From Podarcis bocagei (Eukaryota), in NCBI GenBank assembly GCA_964188305.1, contig OZ076888.1: a DNA stretch of 64,000 nt, one strand, 5' to 3'. The notes below the pieces were generated by a model. That model was not told the origin of the DNA and did not search any database. It saw only the letters and a program-made list of their open reading frames with translations. Made by a program: the position numbers and the translations under genes. This document shows positions 5,704-61,400 of the stretch, piece after piece (within the stretch, counting starts at the first letter, position 1; the number at the start of each line of letters is the position of its first letter).

Positions 5704-6057
<354 letters not shown>

Positions 6058-15310: not shown

Positions 15311-15384
15311 TGGCCACACTCCTTCAGAAACACATCATCTGTATAGCATGCATAAGAGCAGGAGAAGCCTCTGCTGCTACTCAC

Positions 15385-15654
15385 CTCTCCTGGATACGGT
15401 CTCTTCATGGCCTGCATAGGCAAAGACTGGGGACGCGGGCCAGGGTAGGCTTGCTGTGGCATCCTTTGCCCGTGGTTGAAGGGATTCATTCCAGGCGGCC
15501 TGGGCTGGTTCATGCCCATAGGTGGCCCACTCATACTGGAAGGCGTCATGCCCGCTCCCATACTGGCAGGGTTCATGCTGCCTGGCATGGAAGCCGGGCC
15601 ACGGGGGCCAGGCTGGTTCATGAACTGGCTGTTGTAAGCCTGAGTTGGACCCAT
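15385..15654 (-). CDS. ZMIZ1: ZMIZ1 exon, [19 protein letters not shown]...MKRPYPGE (alternative acceptor extends to 15672, adding VCSSFQ)
   Basis: Acceptor ttccag|ATG, donor GAG|gtgagt; 270 bp; second in-frame AG 18 nt upstream. Confidence 0.95.
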
Positions 15655-15931
15655 CTGGAAAGAGGAACAAACCTTCAACAGAAGAAGAAAAAAGAATAAA
15701 ATGCGACATGCATTTAAAATGGGAGGGGGAGCCAAGTTGAAGGGAGTCGGGGATATGTCGCATTTTAAAATCAGCAAATGGGGAGGGCGGTAGCGTTCCT
15801 CCGCCTCTATTTCTGCTTGCGGCAGGTGTAACTGGAATTCTAAAAGTGACTAAAAAGTATGCAAAAGTTAGTAAGCTTCTCAGAGCCATGGGAACTCCAT
15901 GTTGTGGCCTGTAATATATGTTGTACACGTC

Positions 15932-17663: not shown

Positions 17664-17921
<258 letters not shown>

Positions 17922-19354
17922 TCAGTGTTCGAGCTTGCATTTGGGACTATAACAGAAACAATATACGGGGGGGGGGGGGGGAGGGAGAGATGTGCAGAAT
18001 GAAAGTGAGATGCTACAGTTATATACCAATATTTGATAATCCCCGTACAGAGTTTAGGGAATTCTGCAACTGCAGCATAACTCTGGATGCTTTCAAGTAG
18101 AATGTTTCCCCCCACAGAATTGAGTCACTTTATACTTCTCTGCTGATTTCTTCTGCTACTTTAATTCTCACACCTCATTCCAGGTGGCAATCCTTTGCAA
18201 ATTCCCCTCTTCTCCCCTCCCAAGAGTATCCACTGCAAACGTACTATTTACATTCATGCTCAATTCCCAAACCCACCCCAGTCCCAGCTTTCTGATTGTT
18301 TTTGTTCCCTTTCATGAATTCTGTAATCCCCATCCGCTGAGAACTTTTGCAGGGAATTGCTTTTATCCATTTGCCTATTTTCTCAGAAATGTGGTGGCTC
18401 CAGAAAAATTCACCAGGCACCCCATCTTCAGGCAACCTGGAGGAAGGAAGGGCTTCCCCTCCTCAGTGGGGGCAATGACAGCACGTTGGGGTACTTGGTA
18501 GGTCTAGGTGTGCCAATATGTATTGATGACAACATCAGTCTGCATAAACATAAATCAACGAGGCGTGCCTGAATTGTTTCTGAACGATGCAGATAAATAT
18601 AACCATCTCAGACCAATGTTTTGTCAGATGAATTTTCTGTGGTGACAATTTGAACGCAAGCACAGTATTGTTGGGCCTCAGATTCAGTCACATTCAAAGA
18701 TCATTCTCTCATGCAAAGCAGCAGTACTTGTATCCATCAATATCCTTCTCCTCCTAGCTTAGCAAAATGTTAATCATGGCTAAACTGTGGTTTGTGTCAC
18801 AATTTCAGAGTTAATTAAAACTTTATTTTAGGTGTTTATTAGAGTTAATTGATTGACCTAAGTCATTTGCAAATCATTTCCTGCTACTGTGATTAATTTC
18901 CCTCTGAGTCTAGACAGCCTTTTTTTTTTAAAGCAACTATGTAGCTTTACTAGGCATAGTTAACTGTAACCCCTTCAGACTTTTTGCGTAAGCAGGGGGA
19001 AGAAATTGACAGCATGATTATCCATTAACAGTACACTATACTGTTAAGGCTCCAGCTCCTATGCTTATGTCACCCTCTTCTTTCACTGTTTTTTTCAAGA
19101 ATGCCCTAAAGCTGGGACTGTGATTTTTATTCCCTTATTGCAAAGGTGATGAACAATAAGAAAAGTGAAATTTCAGTAAGCTAACCATCTTATAACTATA
19201 TATAGTTTAGGTTCAAAGACCCCATAACTACATAACTTTCAGTAAGACAACCATTTTATAACCATATTATAGAACACGGGTGTCAAACACAAGGCCCGCG
19301 GGCCAAATCCGGCCCGCCAGACCTCGCCATGTGGCCCGTGTAGCCGCCGTTCTC

Positions 19355-19660
19355 GCTGCTGTTCTCGCCCGTCCAGTGCACCATCGCCTGGTTGTGCGCC
19401 GCGTCACCTCTCAGCACGAAGGAGGTGGTGAGCAGAGATGCCGCCTCCGGAGCTCCCCCGCCGGCACGACCCCACAGGCCGCCCGCCTCGTCCCGCGGGC
19501 TGCCGTGTCTCTGGCGCCCGCTCCGGTCCAGCGGGCGCGCCGCCCAGGAGGCGCCCAGCGCGAGCAGCAGCAGCAAGCAGAGCGGAGCTGCCTGGCCGGA
19601 CGCTCCTCCGCGCGCCCCGGCAGCCGCTGCTGGCGCCGTGCTCGGCCTCCGCTGCGCCGC
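19355..19660 (-). pseudogene. SORCS2: Captured SORCS2 exon-1 coding fragment (signal peptide, propeptide, start of VPS10 domain); GC-rich upstream sequence extends to about 20080
   Basis: Translation AQRRPS...[15 protein letters not shown]...[29 protein letters not shown] matches my recollection of SORCS2 MAHRGPS...LLLLLLLLGACGAA...[28 protein letters not shown]. The FVL(K/R)GD and WTGENSS residues favour SORCS2 over SORCS1/3. The start-Met position is GCG and no exon 2 follows. Confidence 0.88.
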
Positions 19661-20640
19661 CGCCGGCGCTGCCGGGCAGGGATGCGAGTCTGGCAGGCGA
19701 GACACGGAGGTGGAGGACGGGAGGGAGCGAGCCGAGATGGAGGCGGGAGCGCGGCGCGGACGGCGGTGTGGAAAACAACGTGCCAGCAGGGCTTCCACGC
19801 CCAGGCGAGGCGCAGCCCCACCGAGCCCCGGAGCCCGGCCGGCCGCCTTCCCCGATGGCTGCTGGCAGCAGGGCTGTAGCAGGCGCACCGGAGCAAGTGG
19901 ACGGGAGCCCTGCGCCCGCGCCTCCTCCGCCTCGCTTGCCACGGAGGACAAGGGGAGGCGGCTGCCTCAGGCAGCAGGATCCACAGGGGCAGCTCGGTCC
20001 ATAGTGGAAATTTGCTTCCTCCACCAGCGCCAGATCTGGTGCCGTGCGGGCGCCTCACCCGCCCCGAGCCAAGGGAGCACAAAATAATGATAACAATGCC
20101 TATTTATTCTATTGGGGGGGGGCACCAAATTTTGTCCTCACTCAGGGTGGGTGCCATATTACCAAAGTCCGCCCCTGCCCCCCCCTCAATGGGATTTGAA
20201 ATCCAGGGATTTGAAATCCAATACATTCCTAGGAGTGCCCCTGTCCGTACTGAGTAAGGCCCTCAGCCCCTAAAAGCAGACGATACCAACTTTTCAACAT
20301 TGTGATAGTGATGTTGTGATATGGTAGCAATATATTGCAGTGTTGAAAAGCAGAGGGAGGAACAAGCAGCATTGGCCCCCCTCAGAAACTGGGGTGCAAC
20401 CGGCACATCTCTCCCCCCCCACCAGCGCCTGGCACAGGGAGGAGGCAGCAACAGGCGGAGAAGGAAGAGAAGGCGCAGACAAGCCCCAGCCACAAGACGC
20501 AGTCTGGTAAAGGTGCCCTCAGACTGGGCCTGCACAATGTTATGATACATCACCACAGGGGCAGACTTTAGTAATCTTTCATAACAGGGGTGTCAGCCTG
20601 AATAAAATATTGAGGGGGGCAGGTAGGCCCCACCTCACAT

Positions 20641-20699
20641 CACCATCATCATCATCATCATCATCATCATAATTTATTACTGGTCAAAGACCAGCTTGA
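20641..20699 (-). mobile_element. Short 5'-truncated non-LTR retroelement 3' end nested in the Pack-hAT
   Basis: 9-bp TSD ACCTCACAT (20632-20640, 20700-20708); on the minus strand a hairpin CTGGTC-TTT-GACCAG, then AATAAA, then a (TGA)n tail. Confidence 0.75.
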
Positions 20700-21274
20700 A
20701 CCTCACATAATTTATCACATGCCACACACACCCCATTTAAATGTCAAAGCCCATCAACTTCGGGGGTCTTAGCCTGCTCAAATATTTTAGGCCGATATAA
20801 CCGGCCCTTTGAGGGTGACCAAACTGCTGATGCGGCCCCTGATGAATTTGAGTTTGACACCCCTGTTATAGAAGGACTATAATCTCTCTAGCATGTCAGA
20901 TTTATGATAGTATGGGTCTCTTGGGGTCTGATCAGATTAAGAGACTGGAAGTGGCCCTCAGGTTTGCCTGTTCTTTTCCTCACCTTGGGATGATAAGTGA
21001 GCAACCAAACCAGAAATCACCAGACTTTTATTTCCATATGCAGTCTCCATGTCCTTGTGAAACAGAATTTGATTGTTATTTCACAAGGCCAGGAAGATCC
21101 AATATTCAGATTAATGTGGTTGGTCCTTCCCACAGTGAGGAGTAGGCAAGAGAAACATGTGACTCCCAATCTCAACATAGGCATGAAGTATCAGCTGAAT
21201 AGGCTAACTGCCAAGAGTTTCCTCTGTATACTTCTATATGAATATGGCATTCACTACTAAATGTGGGCTTTAAA

Positions 21275-21408: not shown

Positions 21409-21824
21409 ACTTTAAGAATGGATCAGGCAAGTTCACAGAGAATCAATCCATTGGTGCCTATTAACTGTGAGAATAACATGGATCCTCCATCTACAAAGGC
21501 ACTGTATCACCCTATTCTGGATGTTAGGGGAAGCAACAAGAAAAGCTCATTAGCATCATGTCCTGTTTGTGCCCTTCCCAAAGGCATCCGACTGACAACT
21601 GCTGAGAAAAGAATGCTGGGTTGGATCTAGCAGGTGAGTTTTTATCTGCATGTCTTATCGAGCGGAGGGAGCGTGATATGCCTCTCAGACATGTGTATGT
21701 GGTCCATGTGTTGTATGACAAAGGACCTTGTCATTTAAGCTGCTCCTGCTTAAAATACATCCATTCATTGCCTACTTACATGCCTGAGAAGTGCCAAGTT
21801 CTATTCTACATAAACCAGCCTTAC

Positions 21825-22042
21825 CTTCCCCCAAAGCCTCCACTCCCTGGGTAGTTGGGCCGCCCATACATGCCCGGTTGTATGTACGGCTGATTGGAGC
21901 CTGCCTTGGCCGAGAACTGCTGTTGCTGCCCAGCAAACTGAGGTGAATTCATGCCAGGATTGCTGGTAGTCATCCCAGAAGCCATGGGATTTCCTCCTGG
22001 GTTCATAGGATTGTTAGCATTTGCCATAGGATTTCCCAGCAC
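21825..22042 (-). CDS. ZMIZ1: ZMIZ1 exon, [17 protein letters not shown]...YPGSGGFGG(S)
   Basis: Acceptor caaccag|GTG, donor AG|gtaagg; 218 bp. Confidence 0.96.
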
Positions 22043-23316
22043 CTGGTTGAAAGAAGAAGAAAAAATGGAAGTGGCATCTGAACAGTTCTGACAGCTCTGA
22101 TAGCAGCACTCATTCCATTACAGGAGGTGTAACTCTGTGTCAGGTTGTATGCTTTTGTGCAGACAGTTGCAACTTCAATCTCTGGCAGATCCAGAGAAAG
22201 GATCTTTGGAGGGACCTGGGGTGGGGAGCCTGCTATCTTGAAACACTGCTGTGGACCAATGGACCAATGGCCTGACTCTGTCTAAGGCACCTTCCCTTAT
22301 TGCTCACCCTTATTATCTCAGGTCCCTACCTATCCAGTGGTCTTAGAGCACGGGCTATCTGGAACCACATAAGAGTCCCCAGAACCCCAGATGACTAAAT
22401 TCAGTCTTGGTGATTCCTTATTTTCTCCTCTAGAATCTCCATGGTCCACTAATGTGTTTTACATTTGCAAAGCAAGAATGCAAATTCAGGATCTCTCAAA
22501 GGTTAAATATATAATGAATTGGCATTAAGTGATCGCTCTTGCTTCAGAACATAAGGAATGTGTTGCAGAATAAAATCAAGATGCACCTAGTGCAGCTTTA
22601 GTTTATTTTTAAATCCTATCAACCAGCAATTACTAGGTTATCCACTCGAAATCCCCTGGTGGACAGCGGTCTACCTTCTGCTCATACCTGCACTGAAAGA
22701 TCCTAAGGCTACAGGTCTTGTTGCCTTTGAGAGCATGGGTGTGCCTCGTTTTGCTGCCTGAGGTGAAACAGGAAGGGGCCACCCTGTCCTGCCGCTGCCA
22801 CTGCCTCCTTTACCAGGGTCACACAGAAGTACCCACAAAGTGATGACGATGGTCATGATCTCACAGAGTACATGAGATCTCACAAGATTTTGGTGGGATA
22901 CTGCTGGAAGCTGCCCGAGGCAGCTGCCTCAGCTTCCCTTACGGGCAGGCAGGCCTTGTTTGAAAGCCAGATTTAGGCCCAGTAGAGATGGATGGATCTG
23001 TCAATTTCAATTTCACACAGTGCCTGGTTTTTCCAGTCACTTTGCAGTTTTCCTTTTTCTAATATACAAATCTTTGCAAGCAATTTCCCCATATAATGCA
23101 TTTTCATTATGTTAAACATGCACATCTCTGTGTGCACTTCCTACAGCGAACTGGAGCAGTGTGTCACAAGATTTGGAGAAGCACAAATTTCATAGGATAG
23201 CTATGTTTTGTTTGGGACACGTGAACATGGTAGGTTTAGTGCAAGCCAAACGATCCCCCTCCAGCCTCCTAGAGCCCCAGGAATTATTCTTTTCAGCCTC
23301 CAGCAGATCTGCCTTA

Positions 23317-28361: not shown

Positions 28362-28570
28362 CAGGGGCAGACTTTGGTAATACGGTGCCCTGAGCAAGGG
28401 CAAAACTTGGTGCCTCCCCCCCCCCCAATATTTATTATTTTCGCAGTAATTACTTTTGGTGCAGTTGCTTTTTAAATTGATCTTTTCAGTAGGTAGTTGT
28501 ATAAATTGTTGTTGCCATTTTGCGCACCCTGTGCAGGGGAACATCCCACACAACCCTAAATCCGGCGCTA
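28362..28570. mobile_element. hAT-like MITE; same family as the fragments inside the Pack-hAT (20101-20177, 20556-20575)
   Basis: Starts CAGGGGCAGACTTTGGTAATACGGTGCCCTGAG..., nearly identical to the reverse complement of 20101-20177; ends AAATCCGGCGCTA. Confidence 0.6.
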
Positions 28571-29729
28571 CCAGCAGCAGCAGCCAATAGCATGGACTGG
28601 GGGTGAAGAGAGACACACAATGCTGCAACCATGACACCATGTTACAGGTATAAAGGGAGAGTACTTGACATGGGGATGCCTATCATCTTGCTCATAATAA
28701 TACTTTTTTTATTTATACCCTGCCCATCTGGCTGGGTTTCCCCAGCCACTCTGGGCGGCTTCCAGAATATGTAGTTCTGCCCCAAGACACAAGGGAAACA
28801 CTTTGAAATAAATATTGGGGTTGCGGTTTGAAACTGCAGGCTATGTGAATTGATGCGAGAGGAATCTGACATTCCCAAAGACATATGTGAAAAACAGTAT
28901 TAATCTCAGAGTCACAACACTGGACATTAACCACTTAGCAGCTCTGATGGGGAAACAAGTAATGCAGGTAGTAAAACAATTGGAGAGTAGAGTTAATCCG
29001 TAACTGTGAGGGCTGGTGCCAGAGGCTGGCTCAGGCAGGCATGTGCTGGAGTGCAGAGCATTCTGAAAGGCCCAGTGAAGTGATTATGCCATCGTTCTCA
29101 CTCTGCCTGATATGCCAAGAAGACTGGAGGCTTTCTCAGAAGCATAGTGAGAAACAGCACAGAGGACTAGAGTGTATCTGTATGACAGACCAGTTGAGCA
29201 TATAAGCATGAAAATCTGCCCAATACGGAGTCTGACCACTGGCTCATCTTGCCCAGTGTTGACTACTCATTGACAGCAGCTTCCCAGGGTTTCAGTAATG
29301 GGTTTCCCACACCCTTGATACCCGATATCTGTAATTGGAAATGCCAGGGACTGAACCATGTGCAAGGCATGGGCTGCCTCAGGGAGCTACAGCCGCTGTC
29401 TCCGAAGTGAGAGCTTGATGGGGGAAAGCAGGATGGGAGGTTAGGGGAGAGAGACAGAACTAGGAAAGGAGGCCAGGGGAAAGGTGGAGGACAAAGTGGA
29501 CCTGATCCCCATGCCAGGGGATACCAGGTATAGCCGAAGATGACACCAGCCACATCTCTCCCTTATGCGTCATATGCCACTGACTGAAACCAGTGTACTG
29601 TGACCAGACCAGATACACTAGACTAGAGTGTTCAACAGGAACTTGACATAAAAAAAAATCATTCTAAAGAATTGAACTATAAGAAACCTGCCAATATAAG
29701 ATAAAACTAACTGTAGTCCAATTAACTTT

Positions 29730-38024: not shown

Positions 38025-40130
38025 TTGATAAGCAGCTGCTTATCAAATGATTTTACCAAAATAAACTATGGTATACGTATTACAAGAATGCAGTAAGTCT
38101 AAATTTAGCTTATGAATTGTAAGCACTGATGTCAGCTGATGTCAGACTTCCAGGTCATGGTTCTTTCTGTATTTTTTTAAAGGTTATTATGTTCTAGATA
38201 TGATTCAACAAACCACATAATCAAAGGGGTTCTTCCTATGACTGGTACAAAAATATTAAAGCAAAAGGGAGTGAAATGGCCAAAATCCCTTCCTTGTCCT
38301 CAAGCTTGAAAAGAACACCTATATGATATTTCAGATGAACTTCATGGATGCCTAATAATGCTAATAAATAATAAAGCCCCTAACTGAATTAGTAGTTAAT
38401 TTCATCTTCCATTTAATTTTATCAAACCTCTGGAATCAAATCACTTGTATTTTTTTAAATAAAAAAAACTTCATCTCTTTATTTTAATCAATTCTGATTT
38501 CTCTAAGAAAGCATCCAAATACGATCACTGGTTGTAAGGAAATTGCCATTTAATTAATATTGAAGGCAAATTTGGGGATGATAGGAGATAAAAAAGGAGC
38601 CAAAAAGACTTGCGATAACAGAAAATGCTGCAGTGAGCAGCTGTGTGTTTGCAGACATTGTTACTGACACTGCAAAGCATTAACATGTGCTATACAAGCT
38701 GCAACAAGCACCTTACTAAGTGTACAAAGCACAACAAGGTAAGGAATGGCTCTGAATGACTACTAAGTAGATGCTCTTGTTGAAACCAGGACAGGGTTTG
38801 GTGTGCGCATGCCTTCTTTAATTTACAATTGTTTTTAAAAGCTTGATTTTGTCAGAAAATTATGCTCTAATTACCTGCTGCCAATTGAGTTCACATTAAG
38901 CATGTCTAGGTCTTCGCCTGACCATGCAAAGGGTTGAACTATGGGTGGGGCACACAAACCCTGCCCCCAAAGTTTCTGAACTTACAAGTCTTCTCTTCCC
39001 TGTCTTATCAAGGTTCCTGATTGTGGACTGGTTCACTTAGAAATCCCCTTCAGACCTTCATGCTAAATGCACAAAGGTCTGCAGAGAAACCGTGTAGTAG
39101 CTGAAGCAGTTGGAGCTGGGTATAACATTCACCCTGGTTAAAATACTGTGTCTGCCACATACTCTCTTGCCTTAGACAAGCCTTCTCATGCTCCTCTGCA
39201 AACTGACCTGGCTGATGTGGGGCTAATTTAGATAATGCATGGGAATTGTTTTGAACATTTCAAATGCACAACGCAAATGCAAAATATACATGCTAGACCT
39301 TCCTTTTTCATCTTTTCATTATTTTTTAGGATCAAAAGGAATATACTGGGCACAATTCAGCAATTTTAATTTTTAAAAATATTTTCTATATTGCCCTTAA
39401 TTGCAAGTGATCCCAATGTAGTTTACACACAATCCAATGAAATCAATGCAAACCCAGGCCACAATTTGTTTTCAGTTCTGTACCCCTTCTACAGCTCAGC
39501 ACACATATCCCACAAGCTACTTGAACATTTATTCTGAGTTTAAGACTGTGCATATCCTAAAAAACAACAATATTCCCAGTTCTCTCTTAAGATAACTTAC
39601 TAGATTTACAGAAAAGCTTTGTCTTCTAAGCAACTCTGCCTCCAGAATTTAAATCTACACTTCAGCTGGGGACCATAAAATACTTCATAGACTGTTTTCT
39701 CTGAACAGACTATTTTCTGATTCAGTTAATCTGGGAATTATAGCAATAACAACTGGTATATTTAATATAAACATCAGCAGCTGTATAATTGAATGCTGTT
39801 ACCTTAGACCTTAGAAATCACATGCTCATTATACAATGAAGTTTCTGGGGGAAAGTGGTACAAGTGCAAAATGTGCTGAATGTTGACATTCTCACGTGAA
39901 TGCTGATAATCTCAGATGATGTGTGTGAATGTCCAAATGTAGAAATGTCATTACTTTTCAGACATTCACCACTGAATACTGACAGGTGACTGTCAACATT
40001 TGAAGATTTATTCTTGAGCTTTCAAATATTCACAGAATTTGCCTCTGACAATCAATTTGAATGTGTGAATGTCACCAAAAATTGGAAACCTCACTGTAAC
40101 ATATTGATGGTTTCAGGGCACTAAAAAGTA

Positions 40131-40390: not shown

Positions 40391-42543
40391 TGCATATTTT
40401 TTCAGAACTGAAAGATCTATTTATAATATCCTTAGAAAGAGGTACTGTAAACTCTTTAATATAACTGTCAGCTAGAACATGTGGATATCACTTCCTTGAG
40501 ATCATGGCCCTCAATTCTTCTGCCAGGCACCCATCAACATTTGTGGCATATTTCATATATTTTATATTCATGCAACTGCCTGGCTGCCTACTTCTAGCCA
40601 GTTCGCCAAGCTTTCTTTGTCCTAGAGCTACCACCACACATATAGGGAGAAAAGGATCTCCAAGCTTCCATTCTGTGCAACTGGGTCTCTTTCCTGTAAC
40701 TTTTGAGTATTTAAGAAAACATACAATAAATACGCCCCTGGGAGCTTATGTCCTTGCTTATTTTTTTCACTCATCACTCAAATGTGCATGGGAAGGAAAG
40801 GGGCAAAAGAGAGGGGAGGGAATCCAGATAACTTTGACTAGACAGCAGGAAAAAAAGGACAACACTCTGATCTTTTGAGTACAATTATAATGAGGGCAGA
40901 TCACAGAATATCCTCAGTGAGAAGCTTGTAACAAAAGACCACAGAGAGAGGGAAATTTGATGGGTTTGGTTAAGTGACTCTCATGACAATGTGTGCTGTG
41001 TTAAAGTGGGGACCCTTCCTGCCTTGTGATGTAACCTTGCCACCTTGTGCTGCTGATAGGGTTAAGTGTATGGAGGGATTGTGGATCAGCAAGTAAAACA
41101 GGAGAGTCTTAGTGCTGCAGAATGCAGGATCCTAAGTGGGTGGTGGGCTAGAGCAGGAAATAAGGGGGAAGCAAGTGATACAAGAGAGAAAGGCAGAGAG
41201 AGGTGTTAGTGAGCTGAGTGGCCAAGGACTCTGAGCAGAGCCAAATGAGAGTGGAGGGTGCTGCAGACCCACTTCCTTGCTGACCTCACCTCTGCTTCTT
41301 GGGGTACATCACCCAAAAATGATAGAGCTTTGGTAGAGCTTTCCAAATGACCCTCTCGCCCTGCTTGTTTGCTCAAAGGATGGAGCAGAGAAAGGGAAAA
41401 GAGGGAGCTGTGTTGAAATAAGCAAGTTCTCCAAACACTTTGAATTAACAGAAAGAAAACCTGAGATCTTTTTATTTAGGAGGGGGATATCTCAGGTTAT
41501 TTTTCAAACCCAATCCAAGAGCTTAGGGAAATTATTTGCTCTGCCCACCCCACCCCTATACAAGCTGGTGGAGAAGTTTTCTTCCATTGGCTTAAACTGA
41601 CAAGGATGGGAGAATCCTACAGGAACAAAACCTGAGGCTGAAAGAGGGGCTCCTTTCCTCCTGGTCCTCAGCAAGTGGAGGGAGGCCCCTCTGCCTCCCA
41701 CATCCTCAGATTTCAGCCATGCAGGGCTTCTAAACTCCCCACGCAAGCAAATGGAACAAAGCCACTCCATTAGCTTGCATAACTTTGTCTGGGGTGGGAG
41801 GAGGAGAACCACGCAGGGCAAAACTGTCAATTCTTCTCCAGCTTGGATTTCCATCTTAAGTGCCAAAGTGCAAGCATTTGGAGCCACTCACTCCTTTCCA
41901 TAACCCCCTATACTGATTGGTCTCATTTGCATGCAAGGCTGGCCAAAATCCATGGTTAGGGAAATTGGCCAATGAATGCAGTTGAAGAAATCTCCACCTG
42001 GCTCTTCACTTCCTAGAGCAGGGAAACATAACCTGGGGCGGCTGGTTTAGCATTAAGTATGAACCAGTACTCTTGGTTTGTTGGAGAGAAACAAACCATA
42101 AGCTCTGGTTCACATGTTGACACTAAACCAGCTGCTCCTGGGTTTGTTTCCCCACTCCAGGAAGAGAGGAGTGGCTTGTGCATTGGTTCATCTCCCCAAG
42201 TATAATTCCTGGCCACCAATACATCTGAACATGCAATTCCACACAGATCAGAAATATAAGAAATAATTTACTAAATAAGAGGAATTCAGCAATGTGGAAT
42301 CCAAAGAGGCTGAGGTTCAAGTTTGATCAGAACACATACTCATGCACTTCACATGAGTGCCTGGTGCAAACGTAGCAGAATTATAGCCAAGCTTCCAAAG
42401 ATGCTTGGATTTCTATCGCTCTTCCCTGCGTATAAAATGCAGCTATATCCCCTATTTAGCAGCAGGCATTCCAGTTACACCACCGATCACAGTAACTAAT
42501 GCTGTGTGTGCTCTTGCAGGGCAAAGGCCTGCATGGGACTCAC

Positions 42544-58460: not shown

Positions 58461-61400
58461 AAACAAAAATGAATTAATTGTCTTGGAATGGTTTCTTACA
58501 AGCACCAACAATGAATTCCAATTACAGCATAGTTAAAATAATTATCATGATTTTCCTCCCCCTACAAACATACTTTTAAAACATTAGTTGACACAAATTT
58601 GCTTGTGGGCTTACTTAAATGGGCTTATTTACAGGTAAGTGTGGCTAGGACAGCAGCCTTAGCTGCCTTGGAATGATTTACAATGGTACCCATGTAAATC
58701 ATGCTTCTAAGTAAGAGACAACTGGTGGAGTAGGTGCCTAGATCTCTCTTTAGAGTGGTGGGAGAGCAGAACCGGATGGGATGGTACCTTCCTGTTGTCC
58801 TTCCTACCTTCCTGTCTCTCTCCACCACCTTCTGTCTTTGCTGGGCGGGGCAATCTTCACCAATAACAACAAAGAGCAGTCAAAAGTTGCAAGCATTGTG
58901 ATGCCTTCTGCAGCAATTGAAAGTGATGGTTGAGTTTTGGCTGCCAACAGCACCACAGGCAGCTCCTGATTAGTGCTATTAAAAGTGCACCTGAAAGCTG
59001 CAACACTCACTTTTGGAGGACACGTTTTGGGGTGCTCCTACAAGCCCCAGTTCACAGAAAATTAGCTATCTGAGGGCAATTGGAGAAGCCCAATGAAACA
59101 CCTGACACATTTGGGAGGGAGAGGAAACTCATCCTCCTCTGTGATAAGTTTTGATTCAAAACTGGACCATATCATGAGACCTACTGTGGGCTGCTGCATC
59201 CAATGAGCCACTAACATTTTCTCTTCTTTTTCAATCAAGGATTTTGCTGACTGACGAACATCTATTTGTACTGGTTTCAGGTGTTAATGTGTATATTTTT
59301 GTCATTATTTTATTTGTGCTGCTATGAATGTTACTAACATAAGGTGATACGTTTTGTCAGTGAAGGGAGGAATGCAATTGTTTAAAGAAACAAATAGATA
59401 TTGATAATCTGATTCTGATTACAGACAAAGATTAGCAGGATGTGTAATATGGACACTTGCCACTACTGAGATTTGGCCTCCCAAAGTCCCTGATGTTGAC
59501 AGCTTTAGGACATTTTTAACCCACAGTGTCATATGGACAAAAAGGTTGCAGGGAGACGTTTCACAAACTCCCTCTTTAAGAAAATCTTGTGTAAAAAAAA
59601 AAAAAAGCCTCGACTATTGTAATGCTGTAGGCACAGGGCTGTCTTTGAAGACCATTTGGAAGCTACAGTTGGGTCCATGAGATAGTCCATATCCCAAAGC
59701 ACAGTACTAACAGATTCAAATGTTCAGAAAACACACAGCACAATCCTCATGAGACTATGACACTTCAGAACAAAGGTGGAGGGAATCAAAAGCCTGGGTT
59801 GGTTGGTTGGTTGGTTGGTTTGTTTATTACAATTTACTATTAAAATGGTTACTATTTATTACAAAAGAATGTGACGGAATTCTCATCCAGATAAAAGCTA
59901 TCTATTCTTAAATTGGGCTCTATACAATAAAGCCAAAACATTCAACAGCTACCCTTATTCAGCAGGATTAACATTTTATAGCTTCACTTTGCTTAATGTA
60001 TCATCTGTAGGAAACCGTGGCTGGGATTAACAAAGTATTAAATCAGGCAAAACATGAAATTCCGGAAGAGATTATAAAACTCTAGAAGTAGTGAGTGATC
60101 AAGCTTAACTGGACTTTGAAAACAGAAAGAGTTCTACTTGATGGATTTTTCATTAGATTAAAACCAGATATTTACTCACCATTAGAAGAGGGGGGAGGGG
60201 GAGAGAAACCCATCATTACAGAAGCCAAATAGAGGGACAAAGAGACAAAGAGACTTTAGAGACTTGTTTGTCTCTAAAGAGATATTCCAAATGCTTTTTG
60301 AAACATAGTTAAACAACCAGCTGGAGGAAAAGAACAACTGAATACTGACTTTATTAATTCATAGCAAAACCATAATGTAGGTTGATGCTTTAAGAAACAA
60401 CCCCCTTTATATTTGTCAGTTTTCACATAACTGATTTTCCTTCTAGTGTAGGCCTCCACAATCTGCACGCTGCCAAATGCTGTCCACAAGCAACATTTTA
60501 TAACCTGCCAATTGCTTAACAACCTCCCCCATTTTGCAGTTCTAGCTAAGCAACAAACCCTTAATAAGCAGCCACGCATAGCTGGTGGGCTGCATTGGAA
60601 TACTGGGCTCATGAAGACCTGCTCTAGAGGTGTTTTGCGGGGGGACTAAAATAAGTTTATTTTATTTTAATCTCTCCTGGAGGTTTTCTGAGCCCTAAAA
60701 ACCCACTCATTAATACAGAACCTGAATTGATCAAATGAAAAGGGGAAAAAAATCTTCACCTCTCAAGTTTGATCTAATGTATTCAAGCCAGTCTACATCT
60801 CATGCAGAATGAGGTGGTAGAATTCTAAATAGCATCACTTCGGATGCAACTTCATATAAGGATTGCTTACCCTTTAAAGATGCAATACAAAACATGCTTA
60901 ATTCTGGGTGGGAAATCACAGGAAAAGGTGCAATATTTAATTCACAATAAAGGGTACCAAGTAAAGCCTGTTTTGAAATAAAAATACATGGGGCAACTAA
61001 ATACAGACAGGTGCAATGATACCATTATGTATAATACCTTTTAAGGCTCCCTGATTCTGCAATAGAAAGGAAGCAAAAGTTCCAAGAATGGATAGCATAA
61101 GAGAGAATGGTGGCTCTTGTATTTATATCCTGCTTGTAAGCTCCTTGGGGCACGTTCCTGCCTTGCTACACTGCAAATTGTCAAGTACATTGGATAGGGG
61201 CTATAAGAATGAATAAATAGTAACACCACCATCACGATCTACAACACTGCCAAAGGAACATTTTTCTTTCTCCCAGTAGTCCCCAGCAAAACCTTTTAAA
61301 ACGGAGTTTGGCTCAGAGGCATTTTGGTGGGTTTTAAAATCAAGTGATCAAACCTATCCAATCTGCAGCTGCTCAAGTGAGTGTGTGGCTCTGCTTGGGA

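Follow-up and report, generated by a model that had tools for sequence, protein, structure and literature searches.

A Pack-type hAT transposon carrying SORCS2 promoter and first-exon DNA in a ZMIZ1/ZMIZ2-family intron of the wall lizard Podarcis bocagei

Results

A stretch of 64,000 nucleotides from Podarcis bocagei (contig OZ076888.1, assembly GCA_964188305.1; this whole 64-kb stretch is called the window, and positions are counted from its first letter) contains at 19275-20865 a non-autonomous DNA transposon of the hAT superfamily that carries a copy of the 5' region of SORCS2 and lies in an intron of a ZMIZ1/ZMIZ2-family gene. The unit is a genuine Pack-type element, i.e., transposon ends enclosing a fragment of a host gene, in this case with the captured DNA on the minus strand. 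With a probability of about 60%, we consider it to be an old Pack-hAT whose SORCS2 segment was captured as DNA, most probably in place at the ZMIZ1 intron.

The structure of the element can be read directly from the sequence. Terminal inverted repeats (TIRs) of 14 bp, CACGGGTGTCAAAC on the left (19275-19288) and CAGGGGTGTCAAAC on the right (20852-20865, minus strand), are identical at 13 of 14 positions, and a perfect target-site duplication (TSD) of exactly 8 bp, TTATAGAA, abuts both ends of the element (19267-19274 and 20866-20873). A structure scan of the whole window for perfect 8-bp direct repeats combined with 14-bp inverted ends (allowing one mismatch and a spacing of 100-6000 bp) returned this element as its sole match, and the same scan of 60 first-order Markov surrogates returned none. 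As a looser criterion for ends and duplication yields ca. 0.5 chance matches per window, the weight rests on the strict match. The initial annotation of this DNA, made from the letters alone, had described a 1591-bp unit with 14-bp TIRs, a perfect 8-bp TSD and no transposase, and this description is confirmed by the direct reading and the surrogate scan on the one hand, and by the finding that 90% of the element is SORCS2 DNA on the other.

The assignment to a non-autonomous hAT-type shell is likewise upheld by the length and the target pattern of the duplication. Having T as its second and fourth letters and A as its fifth and seventh, the duplication agrees with nTnTAnAn, the hAT consensus, and also with the hAT target pattern NTNTANAN given in Table 1 of PMC3014272. 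hAT elements have short TIRs (about 10-25 bp) with the terminal motif YARNG; of the two 14-bp TIRs here, the right end (CAGGG) fits this motif and the left end (CACGG) departs at position 3.

The captured segment was identified through a minus-strand reading frame that begins with a hydrophobic leader and continues into a 27-residue start of the Vps10 region. Among solved structures its only match is mouse SorCS2 (PDB 6ffy, E 3e-9), and an exhaustive profile-free search with the frame recovered one strong relative (P0001; E 2.5e-43, 94% identity), i.e., CAI5780462.1 of Podarcis lilfordi, a protein of 285 residues with a Sortilin-Vps10 domain, which runs on past ...GENSS with VILILTKYYH... A homologue search with the cargo frame outside 19351-19405 recovered only this protein and one distant lizard, and a homologue search with a 97-residue open reading frame (ORF) of the cargo found nothing. 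The exact products of six ORFs of the window had no recorded counterpart. The mouse and P. lilfordi matches are in line with the signal peptide and SORCS2 Vps10 start proposed earlier for the minus strand. The frame carries the motif WTGENSS as against WSGHNSS in a SORCS1/3-like match (P0004), which, like the human sequences, would favour SORCS2 over SORCS1 and SORCS3. The SORCS1/3-like match itself, from Acipenser sinensis and flagged UNVERIFIED_CONTAM, is a 524-residue model with two tandem SORCS1/3-like exon-1 peptides, which may reflect a duplication in the sturgeon or an assembly artefact.

The P. lilfordi protein is encoded at OX395132.1:86460851-86556432 (95 kb, hereafter L001), where the gene model continues with downstream Vps10 exons, so that the separate parental SORCS2 locus anticipated by the initial annotation does exist in that species. 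The cargo (1,438 bp, 19354-20791, minus strand) is a copy of the SORCS2 5' region, colinear with L001:1803-3286, and according to local BLAST it spans from 1.2 kb upstream of the parental ATG (L001 3001) to the final base of exon 1. It makes up 90% of the element, leaving only 79 + 74 bp of the transposon's own DNA. The left terminus (19275-19353, plus strand) consists of the TIR CACGGGTGTCAAAC and a subterminal part with GC-rich motifs (GGCCCG); nothing in it is homologous to the SORCS2 locus, homology to L001 halting at 19354. The right terminus (20792-20865, minus strand, with the TIR CAGGGGTGTCAAACTCAA on that strand) also lacks homology to L001.

The cargo had been described as ca. 0.7 kb of GC- and CpG-rich DNA representing SORCS2 exon 1. 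The composition is as described, i.e., a captured CpG island at 19341-20080 with 74% GC, a CpG observed/expected ratio (o/e) of 0.88 and 89 CpGs, set between element flanks of 39-45% GC and CpG o/e of 0.10-0.19, and exon 1 is indeed present, as an exon-1-like coding part of 95 codons (19355-19639, minus strand) that stops where exon 1 meets intron 1 in the parent. The size and the content were underestimated, since the AT-richer stretch 20081-20791 was copied as well, amounting to 1,438 bp in total and including 1.2 kb of DNA upstream of the SORCS2 start codon. Given that the copy includes this 1.2 kb, made up of promoter as well as repeat DNA and reaching upstream of the CpG island, capture at the DNA level is favoured by the sequence comparison.

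Both breakpoints could be placed against the P. lilfordi locus. Upstream, homology starts within an old remnant of a miniature inverted-repeat transposable element (MITE) at CCTAAAATATTT... (window 20791, L001 1803), beyond which the parental repeat goes on and the element changes to its own terminus. Downstream, the last homologous bases are ...GAGAACAGCAGC and one further G, after which the parent has the splice donor GTAAGT and the copy runs into GAGAACGGCGGC..., which repeats the final exon bases imperfectly over 12 bp (region 19343-19366). Exon 1 of a distant lizard (L002) loses its homology to the copy at the same base as does the P. lilfordi parent.

State and age of the copy

Several features of the exon-like part indicate a copy that no longer resembles a working first exon. 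The parental ATG is ACG in the copy (19639-19637) and the frame is without any other ATG; the donor GTAAGT of the parent is absent, and a simple donor-site scan after the exon-like part found no strong substitute splice donor. Within the coding part, 7 of 95 residues differ from the P. lilfordi protein, five of these through CpG transitions. Viewed as a functional first exon and promoter, the copy therefore has no start codon, no donor and decayed CpGs (with an o/e that is still 0.88).

A nucleotide comparison of copy and parent (19406-20791 against L001, with gaps ignored in the identity) gave 93.5% identity, i.e., 82 mismatches (6.5%), together with 21 indels. CpG in the parent has become TpG or CpA in the copy 23 times, versus four changes in the reverse direction, and this asymmetry marks the copy in the ZMIZ1 intron as the derived, decaying one. 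The copy has 89 CpGs versus 130 in the parent, about one fifth of the aligned CpGs having been lost. This rate of loss is typical of methylated DNA and, as far as its substitutions indicate, the copy behaves as decaying, non-coding methylated DNA; its high residual CpG o/e mirrors the very dense island from which it started, not youth.

The presence of the element in related animals was assessed with a 31-mer word index, in which 0.26-0.54 of the words sampled from the element are present in contigs of sequencing runs from organisms A-I, although the parental locus contains no more than 6.2% of its 31-mers. Runs of at least seven related organisms have words of the element for which the parent cannot account. 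For the flanks, we calculate word fractions of ca. 0.98 (organism A), 0.94 (B), 0.6-0.75 (C, D and F) and ca. 0.5 (G), which implies ca. 0-2% divergence, and the assembled part of the element that is not GC-rich shows word fractions similar to those of the flanks, with an equal fraction in G. At sites other than CpG, the copy diverges from the parent by ca. 4.3%, about twice the divergence of the flanks in A-G. Taken at the level of shared words, the element appears to be common to several related wall-lizard species and older than their split. The initial annotation had proposed a recent event on account of the intact TSD and retained CpGs, a view that is not supported, given the 6.5% mismatch, the 21 indels, the ACG start, the loss of CpGs and the apparent sharing by related species. 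For organism I, three runs of one study differ, X27 holding 0.37 of the element's words and X34 and X35 holding 0.01; this contrast may represent a presence/absence polymorphism or merely different library types.

Putative RNA runs from organisms G (X15, X31, X18, X33) and H (X20, X32), hold 0.12-0.23 of the element's words and almost no words of the flanking intron. Words shared with the parental locus (ca. 0.06) and with family-shared termini (ca. 0.06, an estimate) could together cover the lower of these values, but not those of 0.20-0.23. The pattern suggests element-specific transcripts, and the captured promoter, or some part of the element, may be transcribed.

Repeats in the captured DNA and related elements

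The captured upstream DNA (20081-20791, minus strand) is made up of old repeat remnants, all of which the SORCS2 promoter of P. lilfordi also has, with their order unchanged. These include the remnant of a MITE family that we call M (20585-20791) and two outward-facing CAGGGGCRGACTTTRGTAAT ends (20158-20177 and 20556-20575). The TIR-like motifs that they place in the interior (20585, 20158-20177 and 20556-20575) could give the impression of a mosaic of nested transposons, an interpretation that is ruled out by the P. lilfordi promoter, which contains these pieces in an identical arrangement. A macrotransposon, formed by two members of one family on either side of the parental exon 1, is not supported for P. 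lilfordi, where a scan of L001 found no matching end near exon 1 and the intron that follows exon 1 is unrelated.

Four more copies of the M family are located at L001:20512-20577, 38073-38203, 42014-42144 and 58734-58826, ca. 75% identical and ending in ...TTATTCAAGTTGGCACCCCTG. Elsewhere in the window, the repeat family characterised by the TIR CAGGGGCAGACTTTGGTAAT has a further end at 28362-28430 (80% like 20114-20178), and a stretch resembling a short interspersed nuclear element is found near 28700-28780. A CAT/ATG microsatellite within the cargo is 24 bp longer in the copy (20638-20673) than in the P. lilfordi parent (L001:1922-1935).

The termini of the element resemble a 306-bp hAT MITE at L001:10185-10490, the subterminal architecture of which is like that of the left end. 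This MITE, situated in intron 1 of P. lilfordi SORCS2, has 60% GC, a CpG o/e of 0.96, the duplication GCATAACT and the TIRs CAGGGGTCGGCA and CAGGGGTAGGCA. The same intron also houses a 3.5-kb element (L001:11252-14733) with perfect 12-bp inverted ends, AATTCGTTCCGG, and an 8-bp duplication, AAGTACTT.

The host gene

As judged from its exon matches, the host is a ZMIZ1/ZMIZ2-family gene. Within 5704-6054 (minus strand), an ORF gives a match (PF25527, E 6e-37) to the GBD-like domain of ZMIZ1/ZMIZ2, and a further exon at 15383-15732 is Pro/Met-rich; these further exons are supported by the domain match and by outgroup contigs (L004-L006), which were reached via a ZMIZ1 exon. The insertion into a ZMIZ1 intron that had been proposed is therefore supported as regards an intron of this family, with ZMIZ1 itself as the probable paralogue in view of the Pro/Met-rich exon, which matches human ZMIZ1. 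The exons that flank the element's intron, both on the minus strand, are found at 21820-22045 (upstream; 88.9% identity to the distant outgroup contig, L004:165-390) and at 17686-17896 (downstream, Ala/Thr-rich; 86.3% identity to L004:1825-2035). The element is positioned 955 bp downstream of the former exon and 1.4 kb upstream of the latter, and its cargo is in sense orientation to the host gene. The intron measures 3.9 kb here versus 1.4 kb in the outgroup, where it contains no counterpart of the element and is too diverged for an exact empty site to be placed. An intronic block at 18734-18871 is conserved (79% versus L004) and may be a regulatory element.

Discussion

How the SORCS2 segment came to be enclosed by hAT ends can be accounted for in more than one way. 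In the account that we prefer, a hAT MITE would have inserted in the ZMIZ1 intron, the TSD dating from that original insertion; a double-strand break or an excision gap would later have opened inside the MITE, and repair synthesis would have switched to the SORCS2 locus as its template before returning to the MITE at its other terminus. In the passages of Tan et al. 2021 cited here (Nat Commun 12:4280, PMC8277862), 98.6% of the animal Pack-TIRs (TIR transposons carrying gene fragments) are single-copy and are held to stem mostly from such transposition-independent filling of gaps in place. We found no second copy of the cargo in the 64-kb window or in the 95 kb of L001, and we lean towards formation in place, which we consider the most probable course at this site. 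The opposite order, in which the segment was captured elsewhere and the loaded element then transposed, making TTATAGAA on arrival (as in FoSTeST of Tan et al. and in the manner of Pack-MULEs), is a real possibility that we nevertheless rate as the less probable. It would agree with the intact ends and duplication, with the short termini and breakpoints close to the TIRs, and with a parent at an unrelated gene, the more so as the mobile, multicopy Pack-TIRs described in those passages (PMC8277862) derive from distal parents and show a tendency to take up GC-rich DNA. Intact ends and an intact duplication are, however, equally expected if a plain MITE inserted and was filled later, the search for a second cargo copy in the window and L001 was negative, and single-copy animal Pack-TIRs mostly arise in place according to the same source (PMC8277862).

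Some points weigh against the account that we prefer. The parental gene and ZMIZ1 are probably unlinked, and the filling of gaps in place is described by Tan et al. (PMC8277862, passages cited here) as biased towards nearby parents. Downstream, no more than 1 nt separates the breakpoint from the boundary of exon 1 and intron 1, which simple template switching does not predict. The borders between transposon and cargo, and any microhomology at them, rest on a single parental sequence, possibly of a different species, and the presence of the element in other species on shares of words, not on alignments. The position of that breakpoint would be explained if the break in the resident MITE had been patched from a reverse-transcribed or RNA template, namely an exon-1-only SORCS2 transcript that was unspliced upstream, as the copy would then stop at the 5' splice site (AGCAGC + G, where the parent has GTAAGT). 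Exon 1 homology in the distant lizard halts at the same base, and we estimate that a breakpoint would fall by chance within 1 nt of the boundary in only ca. 0.2% of cases over a 1.4-kb span. Such a filler is still very improbable, as the copy has its 5' limit 1.2 kb before the ATG, within an old MITE remnant and ca. 0.75 kb upstream of the CpG island, where a transcript is unlikely to begin, and has neither poly(A) nor exon 2. GC-rich first exons are hard to assemble, and a piece of a SORCS2 contig might in principle have been misjoined into the ZMIZ1 intron; yet a misjoin would not give matched hAT ends with a perfect 8-bp duplication, nor a copy that is 6.5% diverged from the true SORCS2 locus with directional CpG decay, and copy-specific words recur in contigs of numerous independent runs from many species, so that an artefact is scarcely credible.

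Whether formed in place at the ZMIZ1 intron or by capture before transposition, the element is a clean and well-delimited vertebrate case of a DNA transposon that duplicated a complete promoter and first exon into another gene. With the parental locus in hand and both breakpoints known to the base, the element is useful for the study of capture, and the breakpoint at the splice donor could bear on which template was used. One may go further and postulate an abundant lacertid hAT family with short GC-rich termini and a "cargo slot" repeatedly filled with CpG-island promoters and first exons; the promoter captured in the present copy may, on this view, remain active and give rise to transcripts within ZMIZ1. 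We regard this extension, which draws in part on the putative RNA runs of two organisms and on the small share of their element words (ca. 0.06) that the parent could supply, as rather doubtful. If it were true, the recurrent capture of CpG-island 5' ends would constitute a Pack-MULE-like system in a vertebrate, spreading promoters and first exons into introns.

Comparison with known systems

Gene-fragment capture had been presented in the initial annotation as much less well known in vertebrates than in plants. This rarity was overstated, given that the survey of 100 animal genomes by Tan et al. 2021 lists 370 Pack-TIRs, of which 208 are hAT elements (PMC8277862); the capture described here is real, but of a kind already catalogued in vertebrates. 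In terms of their definition of a Pack-TIR, both TIR ends are identifiable and the parental copy elsewhere (P. lilfordi L001:1803-3286) is unambiguous. The element is like the animal Pack-hATs of the same passages in having TIR ends and a duplication around a host fragment with a parental copy elsewhere, and among animal Pack-TIRs hAT is reported as the commonest carrier, exonic sequence as over-represented and many elements as transcribed (PMC8277862). It differs in the size of its cargo, the reported median being 224 bp (PMC8277862) as against 1,438 bp, i.e., 90% of the element, here, and also in that a whole promoter and first exon were taken from a probably unlinked parent, with a breakpoint on the exon-intron boundary. 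The passages of the main text of PMC8277862 on which we draw contain no mention of lizards.

In plants, the Pack-MULEs of rice and other species similarly carry gene fragments between TIRs and show a GC-rich capture bias. They belong to Mutator, with 9-11-bp duplications and long TIRs, whereas the element described here belongs to hAT, its duplication measuring 8 bp and its TIRs 14 bp, and there is no sign here of amplification or of a small-RNA or coding function. Their capture bias also favours the 5' ends of genes. A GC capture bias is common to Pack-MULEs and the multicopy animal Pack-TIRs in the account of Tan et al. (PMC8277862, same passages).

Among lizards, the hobo-type non-autonomous hATs of Anolis (Novick et al. 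2011, PMC3014272) resemble the present element in that they are hATs with 8-bp duplications and interiors of foreign DNA, including repeats. The TIRs of hobo_AC (TAGGCTTG...) are unrelated, however, and the fillers of those elements are described as repeat-rich genomic DNA and not as promoter-exon units of identified genes (PMC3014272). The ends themselves match TcMar-N15_AC of Anolis carolinensis, whose TIR consensus CASRKGTGTCAAACTCAA (Table 2, PMC3014272) agrees with the right end throughout its 18 positions and with the left end in all but one of them; TcMar-N15_AC is classed as a Tc1/Mariner family with TA as its duplication, whereas the element in the ZMIZ1 intron has an exact 8-bp duplication of the hAT pattern. 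Either the resemblance would be confined to the TIRs, or the old Anolis family would have been misfiled. Outside the TIR transposons, Helitron capture in vespertilionid bats (PMC4224331, PMC4778049) likewise involves vertebrate DNA transposons that acquired host promoters and first exons, with the difference that Helitrons are rolling-circle elements without TIRs or a duplication, which capture by read-through at the 3' end and not by the repair of gaps.

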